A stretch of 64,000 nucleotides of DNA from NCBI GenBank assembly GCA_026770705.1, contig JANJGN010000039.1, forward strand, positions 6,262,001-6,326,000, in the 5' to 3' direction. The stretch is from Isurus oxyrinchus (lineage: Eukaryota). The notes beneath the pieces were generated by a model, which searched no databases, was not told where the DNA came from, and was given only the letters and a program-made list of their open reading frames with translations. Both the position numbers and the translations under genes were made by a program. Shown here in pieces: positions 3,461-45,182 of this stretch. Position 1 is the first letter of the stretch. Every line of letters begins with the position of its first letter.

Positions 3461-3530
3461 ATGGCAAAACTAAGACTTCGCCATATTGAAGACATTTACT
3501 ATTATATTCTCGTGTCTATTGGCGTACCTG
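3461..3530 (+). pseudogene. GPR139-like pseudogene C, exon 1
   Basis: ATG-initiated MAKLRLRHIEDIYYYILVSIGVP followed by G|GTGAG. This is the same phase-1 junction and YY-IL--IGVP motif as gene A exon 1. Confidence 0.7.
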
Positions 3531-4654
3531 GTGAGAGCATAAACAAAATCAATGGATGTATAAATGGATGTTGACTTTGTTCTCAAACGACGTTTCTGAT
3601 AACGTTCAATCGTTTCTTTACTGTTGGAGAGTGATCAAAGCTGAGATGCCAATTTAACCCGAACGTCACCTGATTTCTTATTGTTGCTGCATCTCTCACA
3701 CGGCAGATCCAGTGGTGACATTTTATTTTTTCTATAGGGAATGTTTTGTAACTGGGTGGACTCTGCAATAAATGTCATAACCAAGAGCAAACCGAGCTTG
3801 AGGTTGTCGATACCACAATCTGTGCAAATCAATGCAAGATTCACCTTGAAATAATTGAAAGTGTTGGCTAATGGTTTCCAACGGTTTTGCAATATTGCCA
3901 GCATGGAATCTCTGCCAACTCCCTTACATTTTGAGGCAGCAATATTTTTTACAGCTCAGTATGCAGGGAGGAGAGCTGGGTTGAAAGATAGAGCTGTGCA
4001 TGCTGAGGACAATCGAATATCTTCCTTATCTGTATATATTGAAAGATATTCATTTCTGTAGCATCTTTTGTCGACAACCTTAATGCATTTACATGAAGTG
4101 TAGACACTGTAGTAACGCAGATGTGCGACAGTCAGTTTGTGCTCTGGAAGCTTCCACAAGCAGCACATTGAAAGTGACCCGATCATCTTTGAATGTGAGT
4201 TTTAGCAGAGGTATTTATATCAGCCAGGGCACAAACCGTTAAGAACATGTTGTTGTTTGAAATGGTGGCATGCTTTTTTTAAACTTACGGTTAACCCGTG
4301 AATCCATTTTATATACGTTCTGAAAGTTGTTACTTCAGACAATACATAACTACTTCACTACGGCATTGGAGCATTAACTGAGGATTTTGTTCTCAAGTAC
4401 TGATGCCGGACATAAATCGGTAACATCTATCTCGTCGCGGAGATAGGTACTGAGTCGTAGGTTGTCCAATTTTGAAACACCAATGCAACCTGAGCACATA
4501 TCTCATTCTCATTTTTGTGCACAATTTAACTTCCCACCAACCACTTCCTGCTGCATTAAACCACACTACCAAATATAAGTGATTTACATTGAGAATTGAA
4601 GTGGATCGATATTATAAATTTTCTGACTTTCCTGTTCCTTTGGAAAGCTCACAT

Positions 4655-5170
4655 TGCAAACCATATGCAGGTTCTTACAAAGGAACATAGGAAGCTAAGA
4701 AATGGGAGTAGAAGTTGGCCCTTTGGCCCCTCGAGCTTGATCCACCACTGAAGTATATCATGTCTGAAATCATGTCTCAAGACATTTTCTTGCAATATCT
4801 CATAGGTATGGATGCTTTTAATGTCGACAGATTGGTTCATTTGTGCCTTCAACATACGCAATGCCTAAACCACCACCGCAAATGAAAGGAAATAATTTCG
4901 AACATTCATCACCCACTGAGTGAATAAATTTCTCCTCACCTCAGTCCGAAATATCATATTTTTGTTCTGATATTGTGTCTCCGGCTTTCAGGTACCCCCG
5001 ACATGGGAAGCATCCAACCTGCATCTACACCATTGAACCTGTAAGAAAGGTGTGTGCTTCTGTGAGATCACTCCTTATTTACCAAAGTTCCAAAGAGCAT
5101 GGGCTCAGTCTCGCCAATGTCTCCACATAGGCCAATCCCAGCTAATTCCCAATTATCCAAGGTGTAAGTC
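4655..5170 (-). mobile_element. CR1 LINE 3' remnant
   Basis: Reverse-complemented CR1 tail (catagg..aggagtaga..ggcc.ttggcccctcgagc) and RT C-terminal sequence. Confidence 0.55.
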
Positions 5171-5849
5171 TAGTGAACTTTCCATTTCGCACTCCCTCAC
5201 GTTTTATCCTTACAACCAACCCCGAGCCCTCTCCAAATACAGACCATGACAATTTACTTTTTTCTTATTTTGGAAAGAAGACCGGCAGTGTTTACGATAC
5301 ACCGCTTGCGATGAGGCCTATCAGTCACACTGTTTGCTCTGAAATACTCAATTGCGTCACCAGTGAAATTCCTTCGTAATTTTAGGAAGTACTGGGGCTT
5401 CTCATTCACGGTTGTGCAACTATCATTCACACGCCCTCATAGCCTGAATCAGGTTTTGCCTTCATGAAGAAACAGGTCAGAAAGTAATATTTTCAGTGCG
5501 TTAGTGGGTGAATCAAAATCCATAAAGAAGTTGGAAATCTCCAATTGCTTTCCAATGGCCTTGCAATTCCTCAATCCCCCACAATCAGTCTGTTGGGCAC
5601 CTTGGGTGACATGAAACTTAACCGTAGCTGCCATGCAAAAGTTGGCCTCGAAAAGAAGGTCACGCCTTAGAAAATACACAGAGAGTATCTCCTCTATTAA
5701 GATATAGATTCAGGGCACCATCAACTGTGCCTCTATTAGGAGAATGGTTAACTAACTGAGATGGCCGGGATTATTTCAGTGACAACAGCAATTCAAAAAC
5801 TCAGCACAAGAAGAATGAAGTTGGCTGCTTGATCGGTTTCACGACAATC

Positions 5850-7810
5850 ACCATAAACGTTCCACATGATAATTACCGTGTTGGGGATATGTCAGGCTTG
5901 TGAATACATATTCCGGTTTGTGCACAACGCTGCTGCAGCTGATTGTTCACAGCGCCTCGTGAATGCCCAATTTTGAGTTGTTGAACACGTTGACATTTAC
6001 CTCTTTTAGCAGAATGTTTCTGCCACACAACACGATGGAGGGAATCCCCAAGTGAAGGCGGATTTTGTGTGCTTAGGAACTGTGCAACGGTCAATACTAT
6101 CAATACTGCCATGAGCATATCCACGTGGGTAGGTTATTGGGGCGAGTTCAGTTTTGTTTTTCCATCTTGTTAATTTCCTGACCACATGCAAAAGACCCAG
6201 TCTAGCAGTTTTCTTCATCACGCGGCCAGCTCGGCCATTAGTAGTGCTAGAGATTCTCTCTTCATTATAGCCACTGAAGCCCCCTACGTGGAGTATACTT
6301 TTTATTGCCATCCCAAAATCTTCCTCCATTGATGATCACTCATTCATCATCTGAGGTGATCGATAGGGCTTAATCAGCAGTGGACTTTCCTTGCCCAAGT
6401 TTTACCTGATGCCATGAGATTTCATTGAATTTCCAATTACTTAAACGGCTGTTTCAGATGCGTCACATTGAATATAAACGTTTTGCAACAATGGCATTTA
6501 AGAAAGCAACAAAAAATGAGCGATGCCTCGAAATGGGCTTGAGAATTTAGTTTTTAGATAAGATTATTTAACTGAGAGGTTGGTTTATGATGGAGATGAG
6601 CTTTGAAATCAATAAGAAGTATTAATCTGCAAAAGATAAACTGCTTGAATCGTTAAGGTAGCGGAACTACTGTCAATCAAGCAGGGTGCTTTGTCCTAGA
6701 TTAAGTCAATATTCTTGAATGTTATTGAAACATAACTCATCCAGACAAGTGTAGTAATTTCCAGTCACACTCTTGATTTGCGCCTTGTAGAAGAGAGATG
6801 GACTAAAAAACACGGAGTGTTTGTTGGATAATTATTTACTGTCAATGATCATTGCCTGTCTCTGGTGTAAGGCGAATATAACTTGTCGGTTTTCATCAGA
6901 CTTCTGGGTGCTGCCCAGGTCCTGTAAGTTACACATAGGCAAAGATTTCTTCAGCATCTGTTGAGTCGCAACTTTTGCTTAAGTTTGCGGAAATATGAAT
7001 GGATGCTATGTCCACCCCCGGCTCCCCAAACCCAAACCTTTTCTGAGCACATGATGGAGAGAGATTCAGTGATGAAGTGGATTAAGGTGGTTGCGCCCCG
7101 AACTATGACCTCAGCATCTCCTGAAGTGACATCAAGAGGCTGAGGTGGGTGACTTGCAAAAGTAAAAATCCTTTGTGCTCAGCATGACTCCAATCAGTGG
7201 AGACTCCCCCCAGCTCCTTACATGTATTGAATCAAATTTCACTTGCGATCCCTGCTACCATAAAATGACAAATGTTGCATTGATATGAAGCACAGTCGCT
7301 CTCGCATCACATCATGAGTTCAGCACCAATGTCCATATCTCTTTATCAAATCTGAACGAAGAGCTGGAGCTCAGACGAACAAATAATCAGCGTAAAGGCC
7401 GATATTTTAGCTGTACTATTACAACGTGGCTGGGAAGAATTTTCAGGGACACTGGTCTCCAATCCAATTGGTGAAATCTGACAGGGCCCCTATCCTCTGC
7501 ATCATCCAGCCCCTTCAGTCTTTTCTGTATATCACGCAATGTGAATCACATAGGCTGAAGACTGGCCCCTGCGATGTTGCCATCTTCAGGTGGAGACTGG
7601 AATGTTCTATCTACTCCGCACTTCAACCTCAATGTGGCCGCAAATTATTTAGCCATTTTTTAGCACTGATGTGCTGAGCTCCACAATCATTGCCAATGAG
7701 GATATGGGTGGAGTGTCCTCTGCAAGTGAGTTTTTTGAAATATGCAACAGCATTTAAGATAGCATGTGACAGGAAATCACGGCTGATATTTGCTTATTTG
7801 TTTGTGGGAC
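5850..7810 (-). mobile_element. Decayed CR1/L2-group LINE fragments, same family as 40945-44673
   Basis: Minus strand gives YKAQIKSVTGNYYTCLDELCFNNIQEY, a frameshifted version of YKAQVRSVMEYSPLAWMSAA. Endonuclease-region pieces (cagcctgacata) are shared with the plus-strand copy. Confidence 0.55.
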
Positions 7811-10800: not shown

Positions 10801-11869
10801 CCTGCCGGGAAAGAAACGTGGCCATGCGCAAAACTGACCCTGCCCTGAAACTGCCAATAAATATTTCCCGACCAATATAATTAGTCTGCCTGACAATATC
10901 ACTTTTTTTTCCCATTTGGACATTAAACTGCCCCTTGATCAGCACTGACTAAACCAGACTTCCCACCCTGCATAGTAAATGTTGCTTCAGTCCTTCTGCA
11001 ATGATTCAGCGAAAGATACATTCTGAACTTTTCCTCGACAATGCTCAGCCTGCCTATCAATGTTAAATTACTTAACATGCCTTAAAACAACTGACTGGTC
11101 TGTCATGAACCCCTACTTCACACCGCCAGTCTCCATAAACATTCTTCCTTCCTTGCATTGTAGTTGAACGCCAGCATGAGGGCACCTGAGTAAACATTCA
11201 TTCAGCCTCATCTATGTGGGACTTTTTTGTAGTCCAGTGACCATTATAACATTTCCTGTTTATTGCAATTCCACCTATACCATCCCAAGTGCCCAGATTT
11301 GCCCAGGGCTACGTTTTTTCTTCAAGCTGTCTCTCCTGTTGCACAATGAAACTTCCCACCACTTACTAAATCTATTAAATGCCCGGCACAATTTCCACCA
11401 CTACATCTTCCAGAGCATAACTCTACTATGCTAAATCTTTATTTTGTGCCCGCATTTCACAGTCCACATTGCACCTTCACACGTGAATTCGCTCTTCCCA
11501 CCTCCTTTTTCTCATTTAAAATTTAACGTGCCAAGGCTTTTTTGGACCTTCAGTCAGTCCAGTACACATTCTCCCTCAATGCGTTCAATTTTCATTGCAC
11601 AATAGCTGTCCAGAATTCATTGAGTGTGCTGCTCCCTAAGGATGAATAATCAATTAACGCTTCACCATCCTGGGCACTTTTATTAGGTTCAATGCATATA
11701 TAAAACACATTGCTATTGGAAATCATGCTAAACATGCTTGCATCAAACACTTTAAAAGATGCACGAAGAAACTAAATTTGCACTGAATACCGTTTGCTGC
11801 AAAGAAAAGAAAAATATGTTCACCTTTGTTGTTTATCTCATGTGATGTCTCTCTCTCTCTCTCCTATAG

Positions 11870-12095
11870 TGAATGGCGTTACAATTGTGATTCTTTTGCG
11901 AGGAAAGCATGGCCTCTGCAAATGCATTACATACTTTATGCTGGCAATGGCAGCGGCTGGTCTCCTTGTTGATTGTGCTGTTATCATACTGACCGTTTAA
12001 TTCTGGTCATTGAGGCCTGTGTGCCAGCTAGCTGCGACAATGCTTTGTGAGTCACATCAGACTCTTTCTGGTTAACATTGATATCTACCTTAATC
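11870..12095 (+). pseudogene. GPR139-like pseudogene C, truncated exon 2
   Basis: (CT)n-cctatAG acceptor, then (V)NGVTIVILLRGKHGLCKCITYFMLAMAAAGLLV with stop TAA at 11998-12000. Degraded PVC.. and TSDSFWLTLISTL follow (equivalent to ATDCSVWFTVTFTL). Homology ends at a Gypsy element. Confidence 0.75.
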
Positions 12096-17184: not shown

Positions 17185-17680
17185 AAGTTAATCAGTGGAT
17201 ATCAGATTCATCTACAATTCTACAACATCGTAGGAGCTGCAGACTAAAGATCTGGATCAGTGGGTACATGATTCAGATTCACCTCAGCAACATGCCAATG
17301 ACTGCGGACTGGAGATCTGGACCAATGCATACAGGATATAAAACCTTCTGCGCAACATCCCATGTACCACTGACTGCATACCTGGACCGATGAAAGCAGG
17401 ATTGAAGTCTATCTCCAACCTTGGCTGCTGACTCCAGACTGGAAATTTGGATCAGTGGCTACAGTATTCACTTTCAAACCCACAACATCCCAGCTACCAC
17501 AGGATGGAGATCTGGATAAGTGGAGACAAGTTTCAAATCCCCGTCCAGCACATTGCTGCTCATGCAGACTGGAGATCTGTATCAGTGTATACAGGGTTTA
17601 AATTCATCTCCAAAATATAATTGTTACTGTAGGCTGGAGATCTGGATCAGGGGATACAGAATTTAAATTCACCCCCAAAA
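17185..17680 (+). repeat. Degenerate 65-bp minisatellite, ~7-8 units
   Basis: The GATCTG(G/T)A anchor falls at 17249, 17314, 17509, 17574 and 17639, with decayed copies near 17379 and 17444. The period is 65 bp. Confidence 0.85.
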
Positions 17681-17689
17681 TTTTTAGAG

Positions 17690-18375
17690 AAAGAAACAGA
17701 AAAAACTGTGGAGGGTGGAAATCCAAGACGAAGACAGAAATACCTGGAAAAACTCAGCATGTCTGGCAGCATCGGCGGAGAAGAACAAATTAGACGTTTC
17801 GAGTCGTCATGACCCTTCAACAGTACTGAGTAAAAATAGGAGAGGGGTGAAATATAAGCTGGATTAAGGTTGGGTGGGGGGCACGGGGGTGGGTGGGGGT
17901 TGGGAAGAGATGTGCGTGTGGGATGTGGCTGTAGAGACAAGCAAACAGTAATAGAAGCTGATAATCAAAAGCTGTCCCACTCAAAAGAACAAAGAGGTGT
18001 TGAAGGTGGTGGCATTACCTAAAATAATGTGCTAATTAAGAATGGATGGCAGGATGCACAAGGTACAGCTATAGTGGAGGTGGGATGAAATAAGACTAAG
18101 AGGATATAAAAGGTATAGATTTACAAATAATGGAAATAGGTAGGAAAAGAAAAATCTATATAAATTATTGGAAAAAATGGATGGCGAAGAAACAGAACGG
18201 TGGTGGGGATGGAGGAGGGAGTTCAAGATCTAAAGTTGTTGAATTCAGTATTCAGTCTGAAAGGCTGCAAAGTGTCTTATCGGAAGATGAGGTGCTGTTC
18301 CTCCAGTTTGCGTTGAGCTTCACTGGAACAATGCAGAAGGCCAAGGACAGACATGTGGGCAAGAGAGCACGCAGC
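17690..18375 (-). mobile_element. Penelope-like element 3' fragment (older copy)
   Basis: Homologous to 20311-21000, including the GIY-YIG C-terminus (AQRKLEEQHLIFR) and tail. Confidence 0.8.
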
Positions 18376-19260: not shown

Positions 19261-19602
19261 GTGGCTTTCAACAATGGGGTGCGTGAAATAATAGTGTGGC
19301 TGTGGTGGTTTGGGGTAATGTTTGTGTGAGTCCCTGGGTGAAGCTCCGGCTTGACTGTGCTACCTGTCAGGCAGCGGGCAGAGCTCCCGGATTCGCTGAG
19401 TCTCTGAATAATATGTAGAACCGATACTTCACGACAGTCTTGAACTGCTGTCTGATCATAGACTGACTCTGCCCATAAATTAACATCTCTGTGCAGTATC
19501 TTTAATTCATCAGCATAAATTTGGCACGTTAACATGTATAGGCAGGATATCTATAGTAAACTAATTTTAACATATACGAATATATAAGATTACCCATCCA
19601 GG

Positions 19603-19975
19603 AATGTGATTTGGTGCTGGTTAGAATACAATCATACAGGGTGTTGATAATTGAGTGGATTTAGTGCTGGGTAACACATATTCAGCAGAGTATTTGATAA
19701 GTGAGTGGGTTTACTGCTGGTTAAAGTCAACTGAGCAGAGTATCAATAAGTGAATGAGATTTAGAGCTGGTTAAAATACATTCAAGAGAGTGTTGATAAG
19801 TGAGTGGATTTAGTGCTGGTGAAAATACATTCAGCAGATCATTGATAAGTGAATGAGAATTAGTGCTGTTTAAAATACATTCAGCAGAGTGTTGATAAGA
19901 GTGTACTGGTTAAGATACATTCAGCAGATTGATGCTAAGTGAATGGGATTTTTCACTGTTTAAAATACATTCAGC
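19603..19975 (+). repeat. ~49-50-bp minisatellite, ~7.5 units
   Basis: Unit ~TTAGTGCTGGTTAAAATACATTCAGCAGAGTGTTGATAAGTGAGTGGAT, with anchors near 19661, 19711, 19761, 19810 and 19860. Confidence 0.9.
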
Positions 19976-20310: not shown

Positions 20311-21179
20311 ATAAAAACAAAAAACTGCGGAAACTGGAAATCCAAAACAAAAACAGAATTACCTGGAAAAACTCAGCAGGTCTGGCAGCATCGGCGGAGA
20401 AGAAAAGAGTTGACGTTTCGAGTCCTTATGACCGTTCGACAGAACTTGATTTCGAGTCCAAGAAAGAGTTGAAATATAAGCTGGTTTAAGGTGTGTGTGT
20501 GGGGGGCGGAGAGATAGAGAGAGAGGGGGGGGGGGGTGTGGTTGTAGGGACAAACAAGCAGTGATAGAAGCAGATCATCAAAAGATGTCAGCAACAATGG
20601 TACTAAAGAACGCATAGGCGTTAAAGTTAAAGTTGGTGATATTATCTAAACGATTTGCTAATTAAGAATGGATGGTAGGGCACTCAAGGTACAGCTCTAG
20701 TGGGGGTGGAGGGAGCATAAAAGATTTTAAAATATTTAAAAATAATGGAAGTAGGTGGGAAAAGAAAAATCTATATAATTTATTGGGGGGAAAAAAGGGG
20801 GGGGGGGAAACAGAAAGGGGGTGGGGATGGGGGAGGGGGGGAGCTCACGACCTAAAGTTGTTGAATTCAATATTCAGACCGGAAGGCTGTAAGGTGCCTA
20901 GTCGGAAGATAGGTGTTGTTCCTCCAGTTTGCGTTGGGCTTCACTGGAACAATGCAGCAAGCCAAGGACAGACATGTGGGCAAGAGAGCAGGGTGGAGTG
21001 TTAAAATGGCAAGCGACAAGGAGGTTTGGGTCATTCTTGCGGACAGACCGCAGGTGTTCTGCAAAGCGGTCGCCCAGTTTACGTTTGGTCTCTCCAATGT
21101 AGAGGAGACCACATTGGGAGCAACGAATGCAGTAGACTAAGTTGGGGGAAATGCAAGTGAAATGCTGCTTCACTTGAAA
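20311..21179 (-). mobile_element. Penelope-like retroelement, 5'-truncated young copy with GIY-YIG endonuclease
   Basis: FTCISPNLVYCIRCSQCGLLYIGETKRKLGDRFAEH...VACHFN is the PLE GIY-YIG with CxxC. There is a 1-nt deletion after EEQHL. Nearly identical to 63425-64000. Confidence 0.92.
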
Positions 21180-22855: not shown

Positions 22856-22869
22856 TTTCTGTTTATTTG

Positions 22870-23310
22870 TCCCTCCAACTCTCCCTCTCTCTCTCTTCCT
22901 CTCATCTTCCTGTTATCTCTCATTATGTTTATGTTTCTTTCTCAACATCCGTCTGTCTGTCTCTCTCTCATTCTTTGTCCTTCTCTCAACCAATCCCTCT
23001 CTTTCCTCCTTTTCACGTCCCGTCCCCTGTGACTCAATGTCTCCCTCTCTCCCTCTATTATTGTCCATCTCTACCTTTCTCACTGTTGTTCTCTTCCAGC
23101 CTCTAGTTCTCTTCTTGACTGTCTTTCTGTCCCTCTCCATCCCAGTATGTTCAACTCTCACTATGCCTCCAACTCTCTGCCTATCAGCCTCTTTCTCTCC
23201 CCCCTCTCACACTCTTTCTATCTCTTTTTCAACCTCTCTTTGTCTTTCTCTGTCTGTTAGGCAACCTGCCTCTCTCTCTCTCACTCTCTATATCAATCTG
23301 CATCTCTTTT
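22870..23310. repeat. CT-rich low-complexity tract
   Basis: Visible (CT)n/(TCTG)n composition. Confidence 0.9.
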
Positions 23311-24362
23311 AGGTAGATCGAGGTCCAGTTCTGCCATCTAGGCCAACACACACACCCCGAATCAGCTGCAACGCCGCCCACTTTCTGCAGCTGAATTGAT
23401 GCCTACTTGCTTTATAAACACGAGCATCCAGTGGGAGCTGGAGTGCTGCCCATGCACTGATTTCTACTGATATCTCACTTTCACTTTGTTATCTTACTTG
23501 CGTTGTTGGTTACCCTAAATCTACGCTGTGACTGCATCTCCTCTGAAAGGACTGCACCACGTTCCACTCGGACATTCCATTTCAGCTTCTAATCACGTGT
23601 TGGAAGGAGGATGCATGTCCAATCACTGAGAAGCAGTGGCGATTTTGGAAGTCGGCGTCAGTGGCTTAGTTCTCTGTTCAATCAATGCGAGAGTGAAGGA
23701 TAATGGCCATGTCTTGTGGGCAATGGAAATGTGGAACTAGCTTGAGATGTGTTTCCTGCCCTTCCTGTGTGAGGGATGGGGATGATGGGCTTTGCATTCG
23801 GCCAATGGGATGCGAGGAGTTGGTCAGTGTGTTCATTCAGGGCCTCCCCTCGCCCACGCACACCGCCCCCCCCCCCCCCCACCACCACCCCACCCCATCA
23901 CTGTAAATAAGAGAAAATGCTTTAATTCCAGAACATCATGGTTTCTTTGCTCCCGCAGTGAGAGAAATTTTCCTCCTTTGAAACTGAGCAATGAGCTGAT
24001 AAAATATTGGAAGCGCTGAGTCATTATGGTCCATTGATAAGGACACCTTGAACGCACTGGACACCCCCATCCTACCCCCACTCCCCCGTGCCAGCTGGAA
24101 ATGCTAAATTCAATGAGAGAATTCAGGACCTCCTAGAAATATAATCCTTCCAGATAGTAAACCCACTTCTCCCTCCCAAACATCCCCACCCCATCTCCCA
24201 GCCCCATCCACTGAAAACGTTAAGTTAACTGTTAAAATTCAGGAAGTTCGCATTGATTCTTTCTGCCCAGTGAAAGACCCATAGCCCCTGCTGAAAATGT
24301 GAAATAATGTCCTATAAATGTCAGATATTCAGCTGTTCTAATCATTGAACGAAGTAAAAAAT

Positions 24363-25240
24363 TTAACTGAAAGGATATTTCAACATTTTCCACAACTGCT
24401 CCCTGAACCTAGTTTGTGTCACAGCATAAATCCAAGTGTTTGTGCAGCAACTAAGGAGCTGCAGCATGAAGCCCAATTCCAGAACAAAAAAATCTAGATA
24501 CAGGGAATTATAGCCTAAATCATACATCCGGATCCATATGGAAAAAAACATTAGCATTCCCCATAAAAGGATGAAATTGGCTGAAATATAAAAGAGTAAC
24601 ATGATCGATTTCTTTCGATTCTCCACCTCTGGGTCTTTGGGGCTTTGCCCAGTCCTGTGAGGCCGGAGTCTCATGCGGGCCCTGCTGGTCACTAAAATAT
24701 ACTCGACAGTAAAAATATTGATGAGCAGGATCAGCACAAATGGGACACACGGTGTTAGAATGTGATGGGTGAACTCGATTGTTGTCCAGACAGGATTGAA
24801 CAGAACCTCATTTCTGTAACCACAAAACCAGGGGAAGTTTACCATCCAGTACTGATCTGTGAGCAAAAAATACCAGAAAATGTTCTTTGAACAGCTCAGT
24901 GCAATGACGGTTCCCAGAATCACAGCTGCCGTTTTCTCCCTGCAATATTTTTGTTTCAGCTTCGGGCAACAAATGGCCACAAATCGATCCAAGGTAAAAG
25001 TGACAGTGAACCACACAGAACAGTCAGTGGCTGCATAAAGCAGGACAGCATGGATATTACACACTGGGATTGATCGCAGGAAAAAAAAATACTTAGCAAA
25101 CACAATTGGAATATGCCTCAGTATCAGGTCCAGGATAATGACGAGTAGATCAGCCACTGCCATGGCCTCCAGGTAACGGGTAATACAATTGGAGAGGCCA
25201 CAGCTCCGGCGCCTGAGTATCACAATCGTGACCAGGTTCA
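24363..25240 (-). CDS. GPR139-like: GPR139/GPR142-like class A GPCR gene A, coding exon 2 (end of TM1 to TM7/helix 8)
   Basis: Open 292-aa frame VNLVTIVILRRRSCGLSNCITRYLEAMAVADLL...SVWFTVTFTLDRFVAICCP...RKKSIMLLFYISANF...CCTNTWIYAVTQTRFREQL. It has successive hydrophobic helices, DRF in place of DRY, and the SVW-TV-F/LT-DR-AVC/AIC-P signature of GPR139/142. Acceptor ttccttgcAG lies at 25242-25241, phase 1. Confidence 0.9.
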
Positions 25241-26369
25241 CTGCAAGGAAAGGTAATAAACAATAAAACGCTATATCAATCTGATACCAAAGATGCCAGT
25301 ATGATTGAGATGCGATGGAGATGTGTTACGGCATCCTCCGGTGTAATGAAATGAATGGTCCAGAAACAAAGTATCAAAAGTGTCTGTGATATCGTGGAAG
25401 GCAGCATACATTGAATGGTTAAAATAAGGAGGTGGGAATAGAGTGGAGATGGGACTTGTGGGAGAGCGGGAATATTTGGGAGACAAAGGAGGAAAGGAGT
25501 AATCGGGGGATAATAGGTGCACTTAGCAATGATAGAGGCGCATGGAGTGTCGGGCGAGCGTGCCCATTACGGGTGGTACCCATGGGTGATGCTGGAACGC
25601 ATGAGTGAGAAGGGAGACGCGTTTGAGTGAGACCAGCCAGAGGTGATGATTGTGTTAAGGGAAAGAAGTGAAACGGGGTAAGTTATTATTTTGCGCAACA
25701 TATCACCTGACAGGAAGGCTCTGCAGTTATCAGATGGAATGTTTCCTCTCTCCACTGATGTTATTTTAAGAATTTCGAAGAGAGCTTTCTTGCAAATTAT
25801 CATTTCAAATTAAAGGATAAACGACCGTTCCTTACAAAATATGAAATGCAAATATAACAATCACGTACACCACAAACACTCATACACCCTCACACATAAA
25901 ATGATAATTTGGAGAAATGCAGCACATACTTAAATTATTACGAGGGTAGACAGGAACAGCTCATTCTTTACTTTGCTTAATGTGCTGGTTGTAAACATCG
26001 CAGGACTGAAATGTACATTCCTCGGAGATTGAAGACAAATGGAGTTTTTGATTATCTGGCTTTTAGTCTACAGTGTGGTCGAGCCTCTGTATTAAAGAAA
26101 TGTGCCAACATATAAAGCCTATCAGCCTCTTTTAGTGCCTGAAATCTTCAAAAAAATGTCTCTTATAAAAAGGTTATTTTGAAGTGTTCCTATTATCAGC
26201 AACCGTCTCCCTGTCCTTCGATCTTGGTATTGGATTTCCATTGTCCAATCACTAAAATTTACGTTGTGTACAACTTCAGAAAAGGAAGTTATCTGCAAAC
26301 TGGATCCTTAGTGGGCACATCTAGACAACCTGTCAAAGGCGAAAGCATCCAGGATATATCTTACCACAA

Positions 26370-27000
26370 TCTCCTCTTCTCCTGCGGTGTACTCCGGATT
26401 CCTGGTGACAATGCCTGTGTCCTTATGATGGTGATGATATGAAGGATGCAGCAGAACACTATGAACATGATCACCCGCTCCAGGGTATAATGGACGGTTC
26501 ACTCCCAACGGCTCAGGAATCAGAAGCTTTTCTTTCCCACAACGGCGGGCTGCTCCAAAACGCTCTGTGCGACTCCATTGCTCTTGGTATTGAGGTGTGA
26601 TGTTCACCTGCTTGGTTGCAGGTAGGGAATGGTGAAGTTGTGATTTTTTGATCTATGTACCGATGGGGCAGCCTTCATCTCCGAAAAGCCACTGCGTGGT
26701 TCTCTATGGAGCTACGGAGATGTTGGAAACTTCTGAGTGCTTCAGAATGAAGATATTGTGGCTCTAGTCAGGATATTGGATATTCACCAACATGATGTAC
26801 TGTGCATAAATATACATCAATTGTACGTGAATGCATTTAGAATTCTTTCAAAGCCTTTATCTCTGTCCACTCTAATGGGGACACGGCAGAATCACGTACG
26901 CCATCGGGAGTCCCTCTGCCCTGAGAGGCCATGGGACCGATCATTCTGCTTCTCCCTGTTGAGGGAGCAAAAGTACAAACGTGGCACAGAGCAGATGTTC
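26370..27000 (-). mobile_element. Harbinger DDE transposase remnant within the gene A intron
   Basis: AQYIMLVNIQYPD*SHNIFILKHS...WLFGDEGCP and VHYTLERVIMFIVFCCILH match HARBI1-type YPGSSHDAFIL..WLLGDKGYP..LQYSPERV..IVVCCMLHN. Confidence 0.75.
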
Positions 27001-28288
27001 TCTGTCAGCTAGTGAATACATAGTTAGACAAAATACTCGGAGATAATTAATATAACACCAGCAATTCTCTTGCGTGGACTGTTCCAAATCCATAGAAGTT
27101 TCAATGATCATGTGAACTTAGTGTCCAAAGACACTAGTGTCCAAAGCTCCTTCAACCTTGTGTGCGGCCCCAGGTCCTGTTGAAGGAGGTGACACGGGTC
27201 TGTAACACCTTATTGTTGTGTCAGAGTTATATCGTCCCTGCACATGTTTTAGTTGTAGGTTTGTAAAGTGTTCCTGACAAACCAGGGGTGCCTAGGGCAG
27301 TGCAACTCCCCTTCCCCCCAAAAAATATTAACAGGCGGTCCCCTCCCTATTCACTCCGCTCATTTCGCTCGTCATGGTACAGGTCCAGGTGCACTGTAAC
27401 TACTGCCCCTAAACCTCTTCCAAGGTTGGGCCTATAAATCCTCTATCTTCTCTCGAGTAATGCACAGCACAGCACCATGAAAACCATCTACAGCACCTCA
27501 ATGGAATTTGCAATAATAAAAGTCAGTCAAAAGCCCTTCAACTGACAGTTAGATGTCTTACCCGTTTCAATTAAACTGGAGAGGGTGCGCCGTGTTTTTT
27601 AACAAATATTTAGTGGAGAGTGATTTGCACAGGCTTTCGGTGGACAGGTACAGCCAGTGTTTCAAAGGCATGCTGAAAACGCCTGCATAACATGGGGCAC
27701 CATGTGTCAGTTTCTGGACATGGGATTGCTTGCAGAAGAGAGACTAAAGTGTGATCAAATCACAGGATTGGGAATTTTGAAATTGACTGGCTGAAAAAGC
27801 TGGAAGCAATCTTGGCCCTTGAGTGCAGGGATGATGGTGGAATGAGATTTGGCATGGGTTAGTTTACAAAAAACAGAGTTTTGCATAGGGCATGTTTTAT
27901 GAACGTTTGTAACAGCAATTGTCTGGCCAGATTAACATTTTAATAGCCGAGTCTAGCTTTGACAAATGCACAGCTGGGGGATCATTCGGGTGATGTGTTG
28001 ATGCAGCGAGGATAGTGGGTGAGGCTAAATAGCTGGTTGAAGACAGGCTTAAGGATAGAAAGGATATGGGCTCACACATCAGCTCAGGGCCAAATGGAGC
28101 GTGGGGGTTGAAGACATTGGTTCAGGCTTAGATAATGGCGCAGCAGGCGGGTGGAGGGACTGGATAGGGAACGATGATCCAAACGGGAAAAGTAGCAAAT
28201 GACTTCCATCTTCTTGAAATGTAAAAGACAGTAACAGTAATACAGTCAATCTGGTTTAAAGAACAGATTGTTGCATAGAGGTTCTTAC

Positions 28289-28463
28289 CGCTGACACCAA
28301 CCAGAGCCAGGATGGGAAAGTAACCAACTTGGATTAACGAAATTACACCCTCGATCCGAACAGCTAATGATATCCGATCTTGAGAAAGATAGTAAAGCCC
28401 CGAGGATAAACTTCTGTCCATTTTTGTAAAATTCCAAGATTTTGTTCTAAGATTCTGATTCAT
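28289..28463 (-). CDS. GPR139-like: GPR139-like gene A, coding exon 1 (N-terminus and start of TM1)
   Basis: ATG at 28463 gives MNQNLRTKSWNFTKMDRSL...LIQVGYFPILALVGVS, followed by G|GTAAG (donor GT at 28288-28287). This is 58 codons + 1 nt, and G+TG makes the Val codon that joins exon 2 in phase. Spliced product ~350 aa. Confidence 0.85.
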
Positions 28464-28597
28464 TGTTGTCACGTTCCAATCTATTATTCTCAGGCTCTGA
28501 TGCTTTCTCTCCCCCTCTCAGGAGTCGTTGATCCTTGCAAGTACTGAATGCGACTGTCCCCCTGACATTCGGGGACAGCACGTTGAAATGAGCTTCG

Positions 28598-28648
28598 TAT
28601 AAATAGCACTGTTAAACCCTCCTGTGACACAATTAGGATCCAGGGAGA
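28598..28648 (-). promoter_or_regulatory. Putative proximal promoter of gene A: O/E(EBF)-like site, TAATTG homeodomain site and TATA-like TATTTATA
   Basis: Minus strand reads TCTCCCTGGAT-C-CTAATTG-TGTCACAGGAGGGTTTAACAGTGC-TATTTATA, ending ~135 nt upstream of the ATG. Motif match only. Confidence 0.45.
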
Positions 28649-29649
28649 TTGAAGTTAATAACAGGGACTGAACAAATTGGTTCAGTTAACGCCTTGCATT
28701 CCAACAATTTCTGCATCACAACTTGGTAGAACATTTACTTGGCTTGGATCGGATGTATGTTGGTCGCTAAGGGATGGAAGGCTGCGAATAGAGGTTTGAC
28801 TGACCATGACATGTAAATGTACCATGGAGTGATATCCGAGGACAGGAGAGTTTTAATTGTTCCACGCTGTTTATAAAATCAGAGTTACAAAGCAGAATGG
28901 AACCTGGATTGATGACCTCTTTTAAGAAATCATTTATTTTGAAATTGTTGGTTCCTTACTGAAATAATTCACAGGAGTCTGTTTTGACTTTGCAAGACTC
29001 GGAATAAAAATGTAATTAATCATGACCATATTACACCAGGCAACCAAACACTTGGTAAGTTTTCATTACAGAAACCATGAAATAAGTGGCAGAAAGTCAC
29101 GCTGCCCCTTTCATCCAACTAATGCCCTTATTAACCCAGGACCCCAGTGGCCAGGCACCATTATTTCTGCACCAAGGATAAAGAAGTTGATTTTCCAGTG
29201 ATCTTCTGAATATTCACTAGAAACAATTGCACAATTGGTATATCCCTTGAGATATCGAGAACACTCATTCTAAATTCACCTCTCCTTTAGTGTTAGAGGA
29301 TTATCCACCAGTTCCTTAAGAATCTGGCATCATGCCTAGCTGGAGAGAGACTGAGGCCTTTTCGTCGGGTCTTGACTCGTTGGCACTCTGATACCAACTG
29401 AAACTACAAGGTGATAGGCTCCTTGACTTTATGTATCTGTGCACCTCCTCCTGATGACCAGTTGCGAGTCAACAACGCAGTTGTATTTCCCACTTCATGT
29501 TTTAGATCTGACTTGCATAAATCACCAAATCCTTTATTAGCCAATGTCTTCATTTTAAGATTCGTAAAGCATTCATTATAATGTATACATCCAGACAATG
29601 CCCCAGGCTGGCCCGCCGGATGTCATAAAAGTCCAAACTAAAAATAAAT

Positions 29650-32600: not shown

Positions 32601-33110
32601 ATTGCCATTGGAACACCGTAAGCAACTCGTGATGAAACGTCCACCAGATGAACTATTGTAAATTGCCGATTGGCTCATATTTGAGGTGGCCTCCCTTTCC
32701 TCATTAGCACAACATTTTTAAATAATAACACTCTGGTACTGATTCTGATTCAGGCTCTGATAGGGTGTTATATCAAATGCTCTCAACTTAGGATAAGCCT
32801 GTTGCATTTCTACTCAAGTAGATGGACCGAAATGTCATCCCCATTTTCATTACATTCTTCATTTTGCTTCAGTTCCTTCTATGGCTTCGTATTTTTTGGC
32901 CAGAGATCTTGCCATGAAGCAGTCAAGACACAACCCAGAATATTCCTCAAATCGTACCCAAGCTACTTTCAGTTCCAGTGGGTGTTATATCGGTGAGGCT
33001 AAGATATTTGAACCAGCCGTCTTCGAGCTCAAGATAAAATCAATTCCTTAGATAGTGATTTGATGCAAAGCTCCAACTGCAGCCTCTCCTCTCACGAAGT
33101 GACTTAATTT
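29650..33110 (-). mobile_element. Gypsy LTR retrotransposon (Gmr1-like) pol: protease end, integrase, RT, RNase H
   Basis: On the minus strand, in order: GIDFILSSKTAGS (PR end), ESESVPECYY..LMRK, PIPACTEPFS and WDKVLRFVFLRDAQKESTAFSAFEL (integrase), PIKQHLLRLNP..IQPSHSTWNSP..PKPHGS (RT), DQNPL..YNVKLSHFAGSYNVTADTLS (RNase H). Confidence 0.85.
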
Positions 33111-36100
33111 GGGTGCTGTCTTCCGAGCCCACTGATGGCGGGTGTGATATGTGGCGGGCATGGAAAATATGGTGGGGCCCACTTCAAGACAGCATGAATG
33201 CAGGTCACGATATTCTGCTCAGCCTACCGCTAATGGGCTGCGTTTCTCACCATCGGTCAACGGGAAGCTAATTGCAATGATTAGTACATAATTTAAAGGG
33301 CATCCCTTCAGGTGTATGGAATCCACCGTATCGCCTGTCCATGTCATCAGTATAGCATAACGATGTGTTTCACCGCAGTACACAGGTGACGTGCACTGTG
33401 CAGCTTCACTTTGGGTGAGCTGTGGTGATTGAGCAGTAGTGTCTCCACTAGTCGCCCATTCTTTTCAGGCCTCAATGGCGCCGAGGTCGAAGTAAATTGA
33501 TGCCCGGTACTTCAGGCAAAGGGTGAGGGTTGTGAGTGTCTGTGGGCAAGTGCTGGCCAGCCACGGAGGAGACTGGTGATGGTTGGAGGTTGCTGTCTCG
33601 GGCAATTGCTGCCATCCAAGGAGGAGCCTGCTGAGGGTGCGGGGTGGTGCTTTAACGTGCTGCCCTAGTGGTGGCAGGGGTGTAATGTGCTGCATCTCAC
33701 TTAAAGTCAATAGAGGTGGAGGGCAGGATAAGTGAGGGAAATGGCCACCCATGGAAGACACATGCACAATTTTACCATGTATCTGCACATGAGGCAGATC
33801 AGGTGCAGCGAGTGTGATATGATTTGGTTCTGGTTCCTTGCCTACACGCGCCTTTAAATATCCAAGAGGCAACAAAGTGCCATTAGCCGCTCCATGTCTT
33901 ATGCTTCCCCCCCATCGACCCCTACACAAACCGGCACTGGCTTCGAATCCACCAGCACTTCATTGCACTGCACAGCAGTTGGACTTCACACGTTGTGTAA
34001 TCTCTTCGCCAACACTGGTCATGTAGCAGTCACTGCTGGAGGCGCTGTCAGCTTCTTGCATATTCAGCATCATTGTTTGTAACAGCGTCCCCGTTGCTGC
34101 ATGTTGACAAGGCACCCAGGCAGAGCAATCCTCTCTGGAATTCCGAGGGGTGACCAGCACTTTCTGGGAAGCATTATGGGTTTTTGCTAAAGGACCAGCG
34201 ATGATTACCACGTGTTGCTCTCTTTCGTGCTGCAGGAGGACCACGTCAGGATCATGCATCCTGGTTACCTAGCAGCACGCCTGATGGCCTACAGAGACCG
34301 TTTAAGATGGAGGAGGGAGCGACTGGTCAGGCAGCAGCAGGAGCAGAATCCCGGAGTTAACGGCTGCATGCTGACTGCGACGCCCTGGCTGTGATACCTT
34401 TGGCCTGGGTCCTCTCAGAGGCCGAGATTTGCAGGACACCTGTCTGTTTTCATCGCCCTGCTGTGGGGCAGTGGCATCCTGCTCGGCCTGTGAAGCTGGA
34501 TCTGTATAGTCCACAGGAAGAGGGAAGGCACATGGGCCTGTCACTCGCTGAGTCATTTGGTTGGATGGCCCCGGAGCGTGCACATACTGACCTTCCTCCC
34601 TATGTGTGCCCGAGAGCCCCTTGCTGACTCAGTGAGTGGAAGGGGCAGTTGGATTGAGATCATGCATCCGAGGACCCATCTTATGTACAGTCTGCTGGAC
34701 ACCAACTATGGCAGCAGCAAAGGAGTTAAGACCATGCAGCATTGCATGAGTAGAAGCCCTGCCCATGGTCTCCATGGTAAACGACATAATGCCAGTGTTG
34801 GACTCGGTATGTTGCAATGCCGGCACTCCCCCATGAGCCTGAAGATGGATGGTCTCCTCCATCATGCATTACAATTTGAGAAGTGCAGCTGACATCACTT
34901 TCTGATGTTGGCTGGCTTACCTTTGCCGCTCCAGCTTCTGAGAGATGACCAAGTGCAGGTGCTCAACACTTGACTCGTATTCAGCAACTTTCTGGCTCAC
35001 AGAACTCCATCGTATGTGGAGACCTGGGAAATCCGTGCCTCCACCTGCTGTGGAGGGGGCAAATGATCACCAGATTATGATCCTGAGGCTTCTCTAAACC
35101 TGCTTCCCACGCAGGTGTGTGTCTCTACGCTGGTAGAGGGCGTGGGTGAGCGCTCTAATGGAACTTTAGGCAGGGTCCCTTCAGATTCCTCCTCAGACTT
35201 TTCATTGGGGTTTGACGGGGGCATTGGGTCATGCAATCCCTCCGCTGTTTGGCAGGTACACCTGGGAAAGCAAGGGGAAATAATCAGTGCATGAGAGTGG
35301 CATATGATAGAGGACACATCACACACAGAAGTGTTTGCTAATGAATGTGGCACTGCTGGATCTTAACTTGGTATATCATTGCTGATCTCATCGTTAGCAC
35401 AAGAGTGCTCCCAGTTATAACTGTCCAGCTGAATGACTCTGTTTTCCAATTCAGTCAGAACGTTGATGTCCAGCTAGTCGTTCCTATCTGCGATCTAGCC
35501 CTCCTGTTGTGATTCAATTTGTCCATCATGGAAAGAGATGTCAGTGTGTATCATGATTCCTGCCGGGCCAGATGACAAGTACGCCTGGCATGTGTGGGTT
35601 TTGAGTCTCCTAATGTGCAGGATGAAGACAATGGCGGCCTGTGTGAAAGACTCAATGTTGCGGTCCCTTGCATTGGCCGTGAGTGAGGGCCTTGTGTTTG
35701 AATGATGGGTTTGTGAGTGTGTGTTATGAGTGAAGGAAAGAGTGAGTTACACTGGAGGGATGGGGAGATCATTCATACTCAGCTGGGCGTTCGCTCTGAC
35801 CATCGCAGTGATCGCTGCAGTGTCTGGGTTTGTGACAGTGCTGTTCATCCTCTGGATGGTAGGGCACATCCCTGCGGCCCTCCAGCAGTATCTGGAGGGA
35901 TCCATCATTGAAGAGAGTGGCTGCAGGCATTTTACCTTTGTTGGCCTTTTTTTCCAAACAGAAATGGTGAGCTGGTGGCGATGAGCGTTTTGCTGAGGGC
36001 TGCATTGTAAGACGACGGCCAGGGTGATGTTACAGCCCATTGATGTTGAGCCAAAGTTCTGCCAACTTGGAAACAATGTGTTTATTATGCATAAATATTA

Positions 36101-36210
36101 AGGTGGTCTTGGGAAGTTATGGCATGAAAACCCGCCATTTCTGTCGGTGGGTAGGGCTCCTTTTCACCAGCATGGTAGCGCGTTTAGTGCAATTGTGGGG
36201 GAATTCCACC
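33111..36210. mobile_element. Internally deleted Harbinger element with Myb/SANT-like ORF remnant (minus ~35750-35980)
   Basis: Ends are GGGTG..CTTCC (left) and GGAATTCCACCC (right), TIR-like. LFNDGSLQILLEG..RRDV..AITAMVRANA..MNDL resembles the Harbinger Myb/SANT-like DNA-binding protein. It interrupts the Gypsy protease region. Confidence 0.7.
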
Positions 36211-36544
36211 CACTGAAACAATGTATTAAGAAAGAAGAAGTGGCTTTGGCTCTGTGCTTTCAGAGCAGAGGGACCAACGGCTTCCAAAAGGAGCACAGCA
36301 GCCCTTTTGCTGCCAGAGCCAGCCCACAGCTGGAGGTGAATATAAGCTACTCCGAAGTAATCGACCTACAGGGATTGAGATCCCATGAGTATTTGTTGAG
36401 CCTGAACGAAAAGAATCATCAGTTCTTTCAAAGATTACCTTTGGGAGGCCAAGTGGACGCCATTCAAGAATTGCTCCATTTTTGCTTCCCCCTTGCAATG
36501 GTGATTTTTCACCTTTGGGAGAATTCCTCTTCTTCCGGTGCATT

Positions 36545-36870
36545 TTTGTGTGCATGAGTGTTTGCGTTAATGTTTGTGTTTGTGTATATTTGCCTATGTT
36601 TGTGTGCCTGTGTGTGTTAACATGTGTGTTTTTCTGTTTGTGTGTGTGTGTGTGTGTGGGTGTAAATGTGTGTGTGTTTGTTAATCCATGTGTGTGTTTG
36701 TGTATGTGTGTTTGCACACTTGACTGTTAGTGTGCGTGTGTGTGTTTGTTGTTGCATTTCTTGGTGTGTGTGTATGTGTCTGTGCATGTACACACGTGCG
36801 TGTGTGCGTGAAGGTGCCAAAACGTGCGTCTGAGTGGCAGAGGAGAGAGAGAGAGAAAGAGAGAGAGTAT
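36545..36870. repeat. (GT)n/(GA)n microsatellite
   Basis: Visible dinucleotide repeats. Confidence 0.95.
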
Positions 36871-37139
36871 TTGGGTATCTTGTAAAAGTGGTTAGTATAA
36901 CTTCATATTCCATACTGAAAGTTAACAAATTTTGCCTATGTATTTAACAGGACTGGTATTATAATTAACAAACATGCTTGTTATTTACTGAACGAAGCTT
37001 GATTATCATCTCCTTTATTCTAACAGTATCGAAGGTGAACAATGGACTATTTTAGAGTGTGAATCTGTCTGTTGGTATTACCTGTGGAGTAGTGGGTTTA
37101 AATATACTGTGCTCGCCTCCGATTTGATCGAAACAGGCA

Positions 37140-37340
37140 ATGTCTCTCTCTGCCTCTCTCCCGCTGTCTTGGACTCTCATTCTCTCTCTGCTTATCTGTC
37201 TCAGTCTCTATAACTCACTCCATATGCTTCTCTCTGTTCAGGTCTGTCTCTCTGAATATCTCTCTCTCTCCCTTTGTTTGTTTATCTCTCATCTCTCTCT
37301 CACTCTCTCTCTCTCTCTCTCTCTCTTTCTCCCTCTCAGA
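37140..37340. repeat. (CT)n-rich tract
   Basis: Visible dinucleotide repeats. Confidence 0.9.
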
Positions 37341-37825
37341 TAAATATATCTCTAATTTTCCTTTTCAGTTCCCAAATTAACTGAGAATTACCCTTGACCC
37401 TACGCCCCTCGCTTCCTGCTGGAATTTGTGGGGTTCTGTGATGGACGTTAATCTGGCAAATGAAAGAGGAGTTTTGCCATGTTGTGGATTTTCATTAGAA
37501 TCAGTATGACGAATGAGAATGCTGGACAGATGGAAGAGCAATTTGGAGGGGATGCATCCAGGGCAGGGGATTTATCTCCAACCAGGGTGAAAGAACTCCA
37601 TGATGCCAAAGCTCCAATGAGAGCGAAGAGATATCTTATTACTGATATTTTTTCCTTTCAATCATTGTGAGGCTGTTGCACGATGAACAGTTGAACTGGC
37701 AAAAGGGAGAGGACGGCTGACTGGATGCCTGTCCCCCCTCCAAACCCTTCATCTCTTCACCTCCAGCCGCTGTGGTTCTGCAATTAACTGAGAATCTGCT
37801 GAAACTCTCAGTGATTTCTTTCTTT

Positions 37826-38711
37826 TTATTGTTTAATATGTTGAAGAAATTCGGGTGAAGAGATGTTGCAGCACTTTCTTAAATGCTATGTGAACTTAGC
37901 CTGGTCACTGCATAAATCCCAGTGTTTGTTCAGCAAATCAGGAGCTGCAGCATGAAGCCTATTTCCTGAACAAAACGATACAGATACATCGACTTATAGC
38001 CCAAATTCCACATCAGTCTCCAAATAGAATAAACAATTGACATTGAACACAACAGGAAGAAATCGGCTGAGATAACAGACAGAAAATGCATAGATTTCCG
38101 TCTGCTCTCACTCTATGGATCGCCGGGATTATCCCACTTCTGTGAGCCCGGAATCTCCTGTGTTCTCTGCCTTTCATTAAAATCTGCTTACCTGTGAAAA
38201 GACTAAGCAGCAGAATGATGGTAAATGGAAAACACAATGGAACTCAATTGCTATCCAGAACAGAGATTCGTGGTTATCCCATGCAAAATCACAGAAATCA
38301 GGGGCCGTTCATCAGCCAATATGGATCTGTTATCATAAAATAACAGAAAATGTTATTTGAACAGCTCAGCGCAATCAATGTTCCCAGAAGCACAGTGGCT
38401 ATTTTCTCACTGCAATATTCAGTTTTCAGCTTCAGGGAACAAATGGCCACAAATCCCCCAAAGGTGAAAGTGACAGTGAAACAGACAGGACAGTCTGTGG
38501 CTGCTTAAAGCAAGATGGTGTGGATATTACACACGTGGATGGAGTTCCAGAAGTAAAACTGTTCCTTAAACAAGAATGGAATGTGCCTTATTATCACATC
38601 AGGAATAACGACCATTCGACAGCCACAGCCATGGCCACCAGGTACTGAGTTACACATTTGGACAGACCACGTCTGTTGCTCCTCAGGATCACAAGCATGA
38701 CACCAAGTTCG
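37826..38711 (-). pseudogene. GPR139-like pseudogene B (exon 2), close paralog of gene A
   Basis: Acceptor ccaggcAG is followed by a colinear match to gene A exon 2 (ANL.., GLSKCVTQYLVAMAVA, RHIPFLFKEQFYFWNSIHVCNIHTILL*AATDC, FVAICSLKLKTEYCSEKIATVLLGTLIALSCS, EIGFMLQLLIC*TNTGIYAVT). It has several in-frame stops, frameshifts and a deletion in TM5. Confidence 0.9.
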
Positions 38712-40783: not shown

Positions 40784-40844
<61 letters not shown>

Positions 40845-44673: not shown

Positions 44674-44674
44674 G

Positions 44675-45151: not shown

Positions 45152-45182
<31 letters not shown>

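Follow-up and report, generated by a model that had tools for sequence, protein, structure and literature searches.

INTRODUCTION

GPR139 and GPR142 are mammalian orphan class-A receptors that are activated by L-Trp and L-Phe, and GPR139, like the gene described below, has two coding exons. The coding regions of the OR, TAAR, V1R and T2R chemoreceptor families are typically intronless, and MRGPR and FPR are class-A receptors of internal-ligand ancestry that were expanded in one lineage and have, in part, roles in sensory neurons. Here, we analyzed a stretch of 64,000 nucleotides from the shark Isurus oxyrinchus (GenBank assembly GCA_026770705.1, contig JANJGN010000039.1, positions 6,262,001 to 6,326,000 of the forward strand), hereafter called the window, in which a preliminary description based on the letters alone had noticed a cluster of GPR139-like G protein-coupled receptor (GPCR) genes. 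The element under study is an intact gene, gene A, which is accompanied by decayed copies B, C, D and E. We conclude that the window probably holds a section of a birth-and-death gene array that belongs to a single elasmobranch multigene family of class-A GPCRs, a distant relative of GPR139.

The published olfactory context comes from the catshark. According to one survey, this animal harbors 2 OR and 6 OR-like, 3 ORA, 3 TAAR and 2 TARL genes (PMC11979771), and another reports that V2Rs dominate expression in the catshark nose and that, in the olfactory organ, the cells labeled by microvillous-neuron markers coincide fully with those labeled by the pan-neuronal marker (PMC10116579). In these studies, shark and ray olfaction is put down almost entirely to V2Rs (PMC10116579, PMC11979771).

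RESULTS

Gene A is an intact two-exon class-A GPCR gene

We compared the open reading frames (ORFs) of the window with Pfam and found that an ORF of 292 amino acids (24363–25241, minus strand) was the sole long ORF with a domain match (7tm_1, E = 1.7e-12; the score of 47.8 bits exceeds the cut-off of 30.5). The apparent GTG start of this ORF is an artefact of the ORF finder, because a polypyrimidine tract and an acceptor AG (25242–25241) stand before it; the exon opens with two bases of a split codon at 25240. In tblastn searches, nine relatives matched a separate first exon at 28463–28290 (E down to 4.9e-17), which was also detected by two profile hidden Markov models (HMMs), one of the family (1.1e-12) and one of exon 1 (1.4e-12), and exon 2 matched the family HMM at 2.2e-173. 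Taking together the ATG at 28463, the GT that follows after 175 nucleotides (donor at 28288–28287; like the acceptor, it was identified by reading the sequence) and the acceptor AG, gene A consists of two exons separated by a phase-1 intron of 3,048 nucleotides, and the exon lengths give a coding length of 350 codons (Table 1). Searches, fold prediction and trees for gene A were run on exon 2 alone, and exon 1 was handled separately.

The protein displays the hallmarks of a class-A GPCR, namely the 7tm_1 match, a seven-helix fold, a Cys pair linking transmembrane helix 3 (TM3) with extracellular loop 2 (ECL2), a DRF motif and the Trp at position 6x48. In the AlphaFold2 (AF2) model of exon 2 (pLDDT 86.5, pTM 0.84), the seven-helix fold is seen from late TM1 onward and ECL2 forms a hairpin. 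Residues C61 and C140 (the Cys pair), D85, R86 and F87 (the DRF motif) and W227 (Trp 6x48) were invariant or nearly so in 63 aligned members of the family. Gene A is thus an intact two-exon class-A GPCR gene, and judging from its sequence it most likely encodes a working receptor.

Putative promoter-like elements lie 135–183 nucleotides upstream of the ATG (Table 1). The O/E-like site among them is a TCCC half-site, which matches only half of the palindromic consensus. A comparison of the sequence upstream of gene A with that upstream of copy C found no similarity.

The family is large and, in our sample, restricted to elasmobranchs

A protein search with exon 2 returned 1,178 clusters (90% identity) at E ≤ 1e-5 among 1,901 candidates. 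Among the best 120 of these 1,178, all 117 named rows came from 10 shark species (Heterodontus, 52; Heptranchias, 23; Rhincodon, 14; Stegostoma, 9; Scyliorhinus canicula, 6; S. torazame, 4; Chiloscyllium, 3; Carcharodon, 3; Pristiophorus, 2; Mustelus, 1), and their identities to gene A ranged from 49 to 74%, with none near-identical, so that the species of the window is probably absent from these rows. Many relatives are located on one contig; for example, 11 Rhincodon rows among the best 120 lie on a single 94-Mb record. The motif at the exon junction was present in 99 of the 120 relatives, and the canonical end of exon 1 in 47 of them. Counted as cluster representatives at 50% identity, 824 matched at E ≤ 1e-3, 165 at 1e-10 and 107 at 1e-30. 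We looked up 23 in-family representatives of this kind, and all 22 that were named belonged to sharks or rays (the rays being Leucoraja, Mobula, Rhinoraja, Narcine and Hypanus), with no chimaera and no bony vertebrate among them. The chondrichthyan family proposed in the preliminary description is therefore better called elasmobranch for the sample covered, in which sharks and rays are both represented.

Nearly all of the best 120 relatives carry the automatic RefSeq label 'probable GPR139', and a search of the Protein Atlas returned only further clusters with this label. A scan of metagenomes for DNA of the family gave 22 loci with partial matches of 23–46% only and no family member. We found no description of this expansion in the published literature, with supplements not covered, and dataset S8 and other expression tables of PMC11979771 may list genes of the family. 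The word 'undescribed' in the preliminary description can accordingly be kept for the literature that we covered, but hundreds of members already exist in RefSeq as automatically named models. With this scope, the family is a large elasmobranch class-A GPCR family for which no description was found. Four of the representatives (P0133, P0199, P0257 and P0263) are 790–1,244 amino acids long and contain a receptor fragment only; in these gene models, relics of receptors have probably been fused to neighboring or transposon ORFs.

Gene A belongs to a well-supported subfamily, and the sister gene in our tree is single-copy

We constructed a tree of 46 rows (supports are given as ultrafast bootstrap/SH-aLRT), in which the 28 elasmobranch rows formed one clade (89/83). 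This clade was grouped with a gene of amphibians and sturgeon at 95/97, and the clade of the amphibian/sturgeon gene itself received 100/100. Gene A was placed inside a subfamily of seven rows (100/100), where its nearest rows came from S. torazame, Rhincodon and Carcharodon. Sharks and rays were paired within subclades (for example, Mobula with Stegostoma, 100/99), and several subfamilies are therefore older than the shark–ray split.

The next tier of relatives, at 27–31% identity to gene A, consists of two conserved genes, the P0242 and P0249 groups. In the P0249 group (named after a Pleurodeles representative), each of 20 amphibian rows has a single 90%-identity cluster, and the sterlet is a further member; the best matches of this gene beyond its own group were shark and skate members of the family under study (32–33% identity). 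The P0242/P0291 group ranges over sharks, sturgeon, bichir, bowfin, teleosts, amphibians, turtles and squamates, and no mammal or bird was seen among the named rows of the 120 listed. Gene models of this group (P0242/P0291–P0408) are often fused to the neighbor TMEM183A, and we refer to the gene as the TMEM183A-side gene. Gene A is 31% identical to its coelacanth member, P0242. In sharks, the TMEM183A-side gene is apparently single and conserved, with S. canicula and Pristiophorus forming a pair at 100/100, and it seems to be an unnamed gnathostome receptor that was lost in some amniotes.

Members of the family vary on the extracellular side

To describe where members of the family differ, we computed the entropy at each position among 120 close relatives of gene A. 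An entropy of at least 2 bits was observed at 27 positions, 22 of which fall within the 93 residues that make up the extracellular loops and the outer thirds of the helices (Mann–Whitney, P = 2.6e-7). For this shark subfamily, mean entropy was 1.31 bits on the outside and 0.73 bits on the inside, and the middles of the helices (0.53 bits) and the cytoplasmic face (0.73 bits) were nearly fixed. No such skew was found in the family of the TMEM183A-side gene, which served as a control (outside 1.36 bits, inside 1.44 bits). Because the helix core and the cytoplasmic face are nearly invariant in 120 relatives, purifying selection is needed to account for them.

The window contains one intact copy and four relics

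The preliminary description had counted three paralogs, one open and two pseudogenes. Gene A is indeed open and copies B and C are decayed, but relics D and E had been missed, which brings the 64-kb window to four relics (B, C, D and E; Table 1) beside its single intact copy. These are decayed copies of different ages, relic E being a probable one. The copies occur in both orientations, as had been noticed, with A and B on the minus strand and C on the plus strand.

Copy B was matched by tblastn only across three reading frames (joint E = 1.4e-62), and the family HMM recovered it in three pieces (3.1e-56, 2.2e-29 and 1.1e-6); in a blastn comparison of the window with itself, it extended over 37856–38749. 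Its DNA alignment with gene A showed 73% identity, 11 internal gaps of which none is a multiple of three, and five stops in the frame of gene A. A quick tree placed copy B, represented by its largest piece, inside the subfamily of gene A. Over 273 codons, the divergence between A and B amounted to 0.59 synonymous substitutions per site (dS) and 0.28 nonsynonymous substitutions per site (dN), with a ratio of 0.47 that covers the neutral phase of B. Judged by this divergence, gene A and copy B are old duplicates. The acceptor AG of copy B (38713–38712) stands at the same codon position as in gene A, and neither the family HMM nor the exon-1 HMM found an exon 1 of copy B in the window, where assembly gaps lie upstream of B.

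Copy C retains an exon-2 stub with about 43 codons of TM1–TM2 ahead of its stop (tblastn E = 1.6e-5, down to 2.2e-6 with relatives; HMM 5e-9). A candidate for its exon 1 was the sole match of the exon-1 HMM in the window besides gene A, with a marginal independent E-value of 0.17. We dropped a low-stringency tblastn search as support for this exon, as its E-values of 2–5 stood amid hundreds of equally weak chance matches. The claim of the preliminary description that all copies share the same phase-1 intron in TM1 thus agrees with the intron of gene A and with the equally placed acceptors of B and C, but not with the first exons, since that of B is missing and that of C is marginal. We also considered an origin of the copies as retrocopies and rejected it, because A, B and C have all kept the intron.

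Relic D is a fragment of the C-terminal end. A minisatellite at 19602–19975 (period 50/99/149 bp, 73–81% matches) adjoins it directly upstream on the minus strand and may mark the truncation point of this copy. For relic E, tblastn recovered the pieces 62428/62365–62291, 62259–62125 and 62053–61973 with E-values from 4e-4 to 0.6, and the HMM gave 0.022 and 1.6.

The birth-and-death repertoire that had been suggested is supported by these data: one intact copy stands against four relics, A and B are old duplicates at a dS of 0.59, and the relatives vary on the ligand side.

Table 1. Positions of gene A, of the decayed copies and of repeats and gaps in the 64,000-nucleotide window
Feature	Position	Strand	Details
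Gene A, exon 1	28289–28463	–	ATG at 28463; 175 nucleotides = 58 codons + 1 base; N-terminus and first half of TM1
Gene A, intron	25241–28288	–	3,048 nucleotides, GT...AG, phase 1, one codon ahead of the conserved TM1 Asn
Gene A, exon 2	24363–25240	–	Open frame, covering the end of TM1 through helix 8; stop TAA 24365–24363
Gene A, promoter-like elements (putative)	28598–28646	–	TATA-like 28605–28598, TAATTG 28635–28630, TCCC half-site 28646–28639
Pseudogene B	37856–38711	–	Dead exon 2; stops in the frame of gene A at 38507, 38300, 38115, 37932 and 37888, plus at least two frameshifts
Copy C, exon-2 stub	11870–12045	+	Acceptor AG 11868–11869 at the family position; end of TM1 to TM2; stop 11998–12000, homology fading after it
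Copy C, possible exon-1 relic	3461–3530	+	ATG 3461; 23 codons + 1 base; family exon-1 end motif, then phase-1 GT 3531–3532
Relic D	19409–19588	–	Fragment from TM7 to the C-terminus; HMM positions 333–393, E = 1.9e-6; tblastn with nine relatives, E = 0.002–0.11
Relic E (probable)	61952–62428	–	Weak colinear TM5–TM7 pieces in two reading frames
Interspersed repeat, copy 1	17694–18369		
Interspersed repeat, copy 2	20313–20990		92.7% identical to copy 3
Interspersed repeat, copy 3	63426–64000		92.7% identical to copy 2
Inverted pair of 540-bp segments	33774–34310 and 50670–51217		64% identical
CA/TG-rich tract	39700–40860		Flanks assembly gap 40204–40491
CA/TG-rich tract	44600–45900		Flanks assembly gap 44971–45116
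Tandem duplication	46518–46743		112-bp unit, 92% identical

Gene A is only distantly related to GPR139

We compared gene A with proteins of solved structure and found that its sole matches in the PDB at E ≤ 1e-5 were GPR139 chains (human GPR139, 32.8 bits, E = 4.8e-7). The identity between gene A and human GPR139 is approximately 21–25%. In Foldseek, GPR139 took rank 2, with 21% identity, the highest among the top matches; the other fold neighbors were peptide- or metabolite-type receptors, namely the ghrelin receptor, TRHR, MCHR1, NTSR1 and CCKAR. GPR139 was also the best PDB match of proteins P0008 and P0291. A full-length catshark relative of gene A scored 38.3 bits against GPR139, whereas P0291, a different shark gene that represents a separate conserved lineage, scored 68.8 bits.

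R244 is one position of the GPR139 agonist site. The remaining agonist residues considered here are F109 (3x33), H187 (5x43), W241 (6x48) and N271 (7x38), as given in PMC5430874. In the HMMER alignment, gene A carries Tyr, Thr (gapped and approximate), Trp, Phe and Leu at F109, H187, W241, N271 and R244, respectively; that is, only the generic Trp 6x48 and an aromatic residue at 3x33 are kept, and three of the five residues are replaced. Because the agonist residues are mostly replaced, sensing of amino acids cannot be inferred by homology, and the amino-acid ligands proposed in the preliminary description are not supported.

In terms of classification, gene A differs from the GPR139/GPR142 orthology group in identity, copy number and agonist-site residues. 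It does belong to a wider GPR139-like branch, since GPR139 is its nearest characterized relative and its TM7 contains an N-x-x-x-Y motif without Pro, which is also found in P0291 and GPR139. The term 'GPR139-like' is hence appropriate in a loose sense only.

No further gene was recognized around the receptor copies

The statement that the window contains no other genes is consistent with our searches, in which 20 other ORFs of the window gave no Pfam match below E = 0.04 and a search of the window against Rfam gave no match, although genes with small exons may have escaped them. When the window was compared with itself, 10% of it was self-similar, which does not establish the TE-dense setting named in the preliminary description. 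An interspersed repeat of approximately 600–700 bp is present in three copies (Table 1), of which the last two are 92.7% identical and the other pairings 76–77%; the ORFs within it had no Pfam match, and it is probably a non-autonomous element. Two parts of the window are GC-rich (GC 0.51–0.53), and the segments of the inverted 540-bp pair are both found there. Several micro- and minisatellites were also present, and the CA/TG-rich simple-sequence tracts that flank the two assembly gaps give rise to long low-complexity ORFs.

DISCUSSION

The array in the window probably arose from an ancestral single gene that multiplied in the elasmobranch stem lineage and kept turning over thereafter. Members of the family diverge in their extracellular loops and outer helix ends, with the membrane core and the whole cytoplasmic face nearly constant, and many receptors of differing ligand specificity would in this way be coupled to one common transducer. 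Because of the size of the family, the detection of varied chemical cues, i.e. a use that is chemosensory in the broad sense, may be the most likely use, which we suggest tentatively. It is likewise possible, short of being probable, that the family is an unrecognized vertebrate chemoreceptor family, in which an ordinary class-A gene was recruited in the elasmobranch ancestor and gave rise to a hundred or more ligand-diversified receptors.

In its strong form, this proposal would make the family an olfactory or gustatory repertoire that is expressed as one or few receptors per sensory cell, detects waterborne amino acids or peptides and offsets the tiny OR, TAAR and V1R sets. The size of the family, its pseudogene load and its extracellular variability resemble those of OR, TAAR, V1R and T2R, the catshark has only the few OR, ORA, TAAR and TARL genes counted above (PMC11979771), and the structural neighbors of gene A are peptide receptors, with an ECL2 hairpin in the model. 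On the other hand, the coding region is interrupted by an intron, unlike those of OR, TAAR, V1R and T2R, the O/E-like site is only a half-site, most of the GPR139 agonist residues are replaced, no transcript was seen in the runs that we checked (see below), and the catshark nose shows a complete overlap of microvillous and pan-neuronal markers and a dominance of V2Rs (PMC10116579). We therefore regard the strong form as conceivable but doubtful. A somewhat less likely explanation, and on balance an unlikely one, is that the receptors recognize internal ligands such as neuropeptides, host-defense or immune peptides or metabolites in brain, gut, leucocytes or somatosensory neurons, similar to the expansions of chemokine receptors and MRGPRs, and have no part in smell or taste. 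The family goes unreported in the main text of the catshark olfactory surveys (PMC11979771, PMC10116579), as would be expected in that case. Furthermore, the nearest relatives in sequence and fold (GPR139 and the ghrelin, TRH, MCH, neurotensin and CCK receptors) sense internal peptides or metabolites, and the single-copy state of the sister gene in amphibians and sturgeon suggests that the family descends from an ordinary internal receptor. However, nearly all known vertebrate GPCR families that reach a hundred members or more are chemosensory; hundreds of matching internal ligands are hard to picture, and the skew of variation toward the extracellular side, together with the high pseudogene load, points to shifting external targets.

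Two other explanations have far less in their favor. If segmental duplication had spread the family as genomic debris, gene A and most of the other members would be disused and the open frame would be luck. The four relics beside one intact copy, the lack of transcripts in the runs checked and the A–B ratio of 0.47 could be read in this way, but that ratio includes the neutral phase of B, and gene A is open over the 292 codons of exon 2 with intact splice sites, whereas B at a dS of 0.59 has accumulated five stops and 11 gaps. The near-invariant helix core and cytoplasmic face of 120 relatives (0.53–0.73 bits) also speak for purifying selection, and we consider this explanation very improbable. 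Still more remote, to the point of being negligible, is the chance that gene A is nothing more than the GPR139 or GPR142 orthologue of the shark, with the other copies as mere local duplicates; the preliminary description had named syntenic orthology to GPR139 as an outcome that would overturn its proposal. The automatic RefSeq names, the best PDB match and the TM7 motif without Pro that both proteins share are compatible with orthology. Nevertheless, we rejected gene A as the GPR139 orthologue, given the weak match to the human protein (32.8 bits, E = 4.8e-7), the identity of 21% in Foldseek, the far higher score of the other shark gene P0291, and the placement of gene A inside the elasmobranch clade, which has 28 rows in the tree and hundreds more members beyond it.

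Several observations weigh against the interpretation of the window as part of a functional elasmobranch receptor array, or limit it. The stop of gene A lies a few residues before that of most relatives (24345–24365, minus strand), and the tblastn alignments of five of the nine relatives extend past it to 24345; this C-terminal shortening, which follows helix 8, is probably harmless. None of the six sequencing runs that hold gene A is on record as RNA, and the reads of four runs guessed to be RNA gave one contig of 33 nucleotides over 24000–28700, results that decide neither way. Among the 50 most specific genes of the catshark 'brain & olfactory epithelium' library, as listed in PMC11979771, there is no GPCR. 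The family counts refer to clusters pooled over species and not to genes per genome, the monophyly of the elasmobranch rows is moderately supported, and the skew in entropy, a proxy at the protein level, was measured in one subfamily in which orthologues and paralogues are mixed. Finally, the distance from GPR139 and GPR142 is measured by scores to the human PDB chain, with the true GPR139 and GPR142 standing outside the trees.

The birth-and-death array that we propose would be of interest under more than one outcome. A class-A family of this size with a variable ligand side would represent either a sensory repertoire that has been overlooked or, among vertebrates, the largest GPCR expansion known outside chemosensation. 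If the chemoreceptor interpretation is true, sharks and rays would possess class-A receptors for odorants or tastants beyond those supplied by their very small sets of OR, TAAR and V1R genes. The single-copy counterpart of amphibians and sturgeon would provide a before-and-after pair for the conversion of an ordinary receptor into a repertoire. In any case, hundreds of shark genes are misleadingly labeled 'probable GPR139' by automatic annotation, and the pharmacology of GPR139 should not be transferred to them on the strength of that label.

Compared with known systems, the family resembles GPR139 in the DR(Y/F)-(V/I)-A-(I/V)-C motif after TM3 and in a TM7 without the usual Pro, but GPR139 is single-copy whereas the shark family has hundreds of copies, and this family forms a clade of its own with a single-copy amphibian counterpart. 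The TMEM183A-side gene belongs to the same wider GPR139-like neighborhood as gene A, yet it forms a separate clade (100/100) and its variability shows no outward skew. The 'probable GPR139' gene of the P0249 group is the sister of the elasmobranch family in our tree (95/97) and differs from it in having one cluster per species (20 amphibian rows and the sterlet), as opposed to hundreds in elasmobranchs. MRGPR and FPR differ in that they are mammalian expansions with far fewer copies and belong to a different branch of class A. With OR, TAAR, V1R (ORA) and T2R, the family shares a lineage-specific high copy number, clusters in which intact genes and pseudogenes are mixed, and variation on the ligand side combined with a conserved signaling face; it differs from them in that its coding region is split by a phase-1 intron (3,048 nucleotides in gene A) and in that its relatives by sequence are peptide- and metabolite-type receptors.

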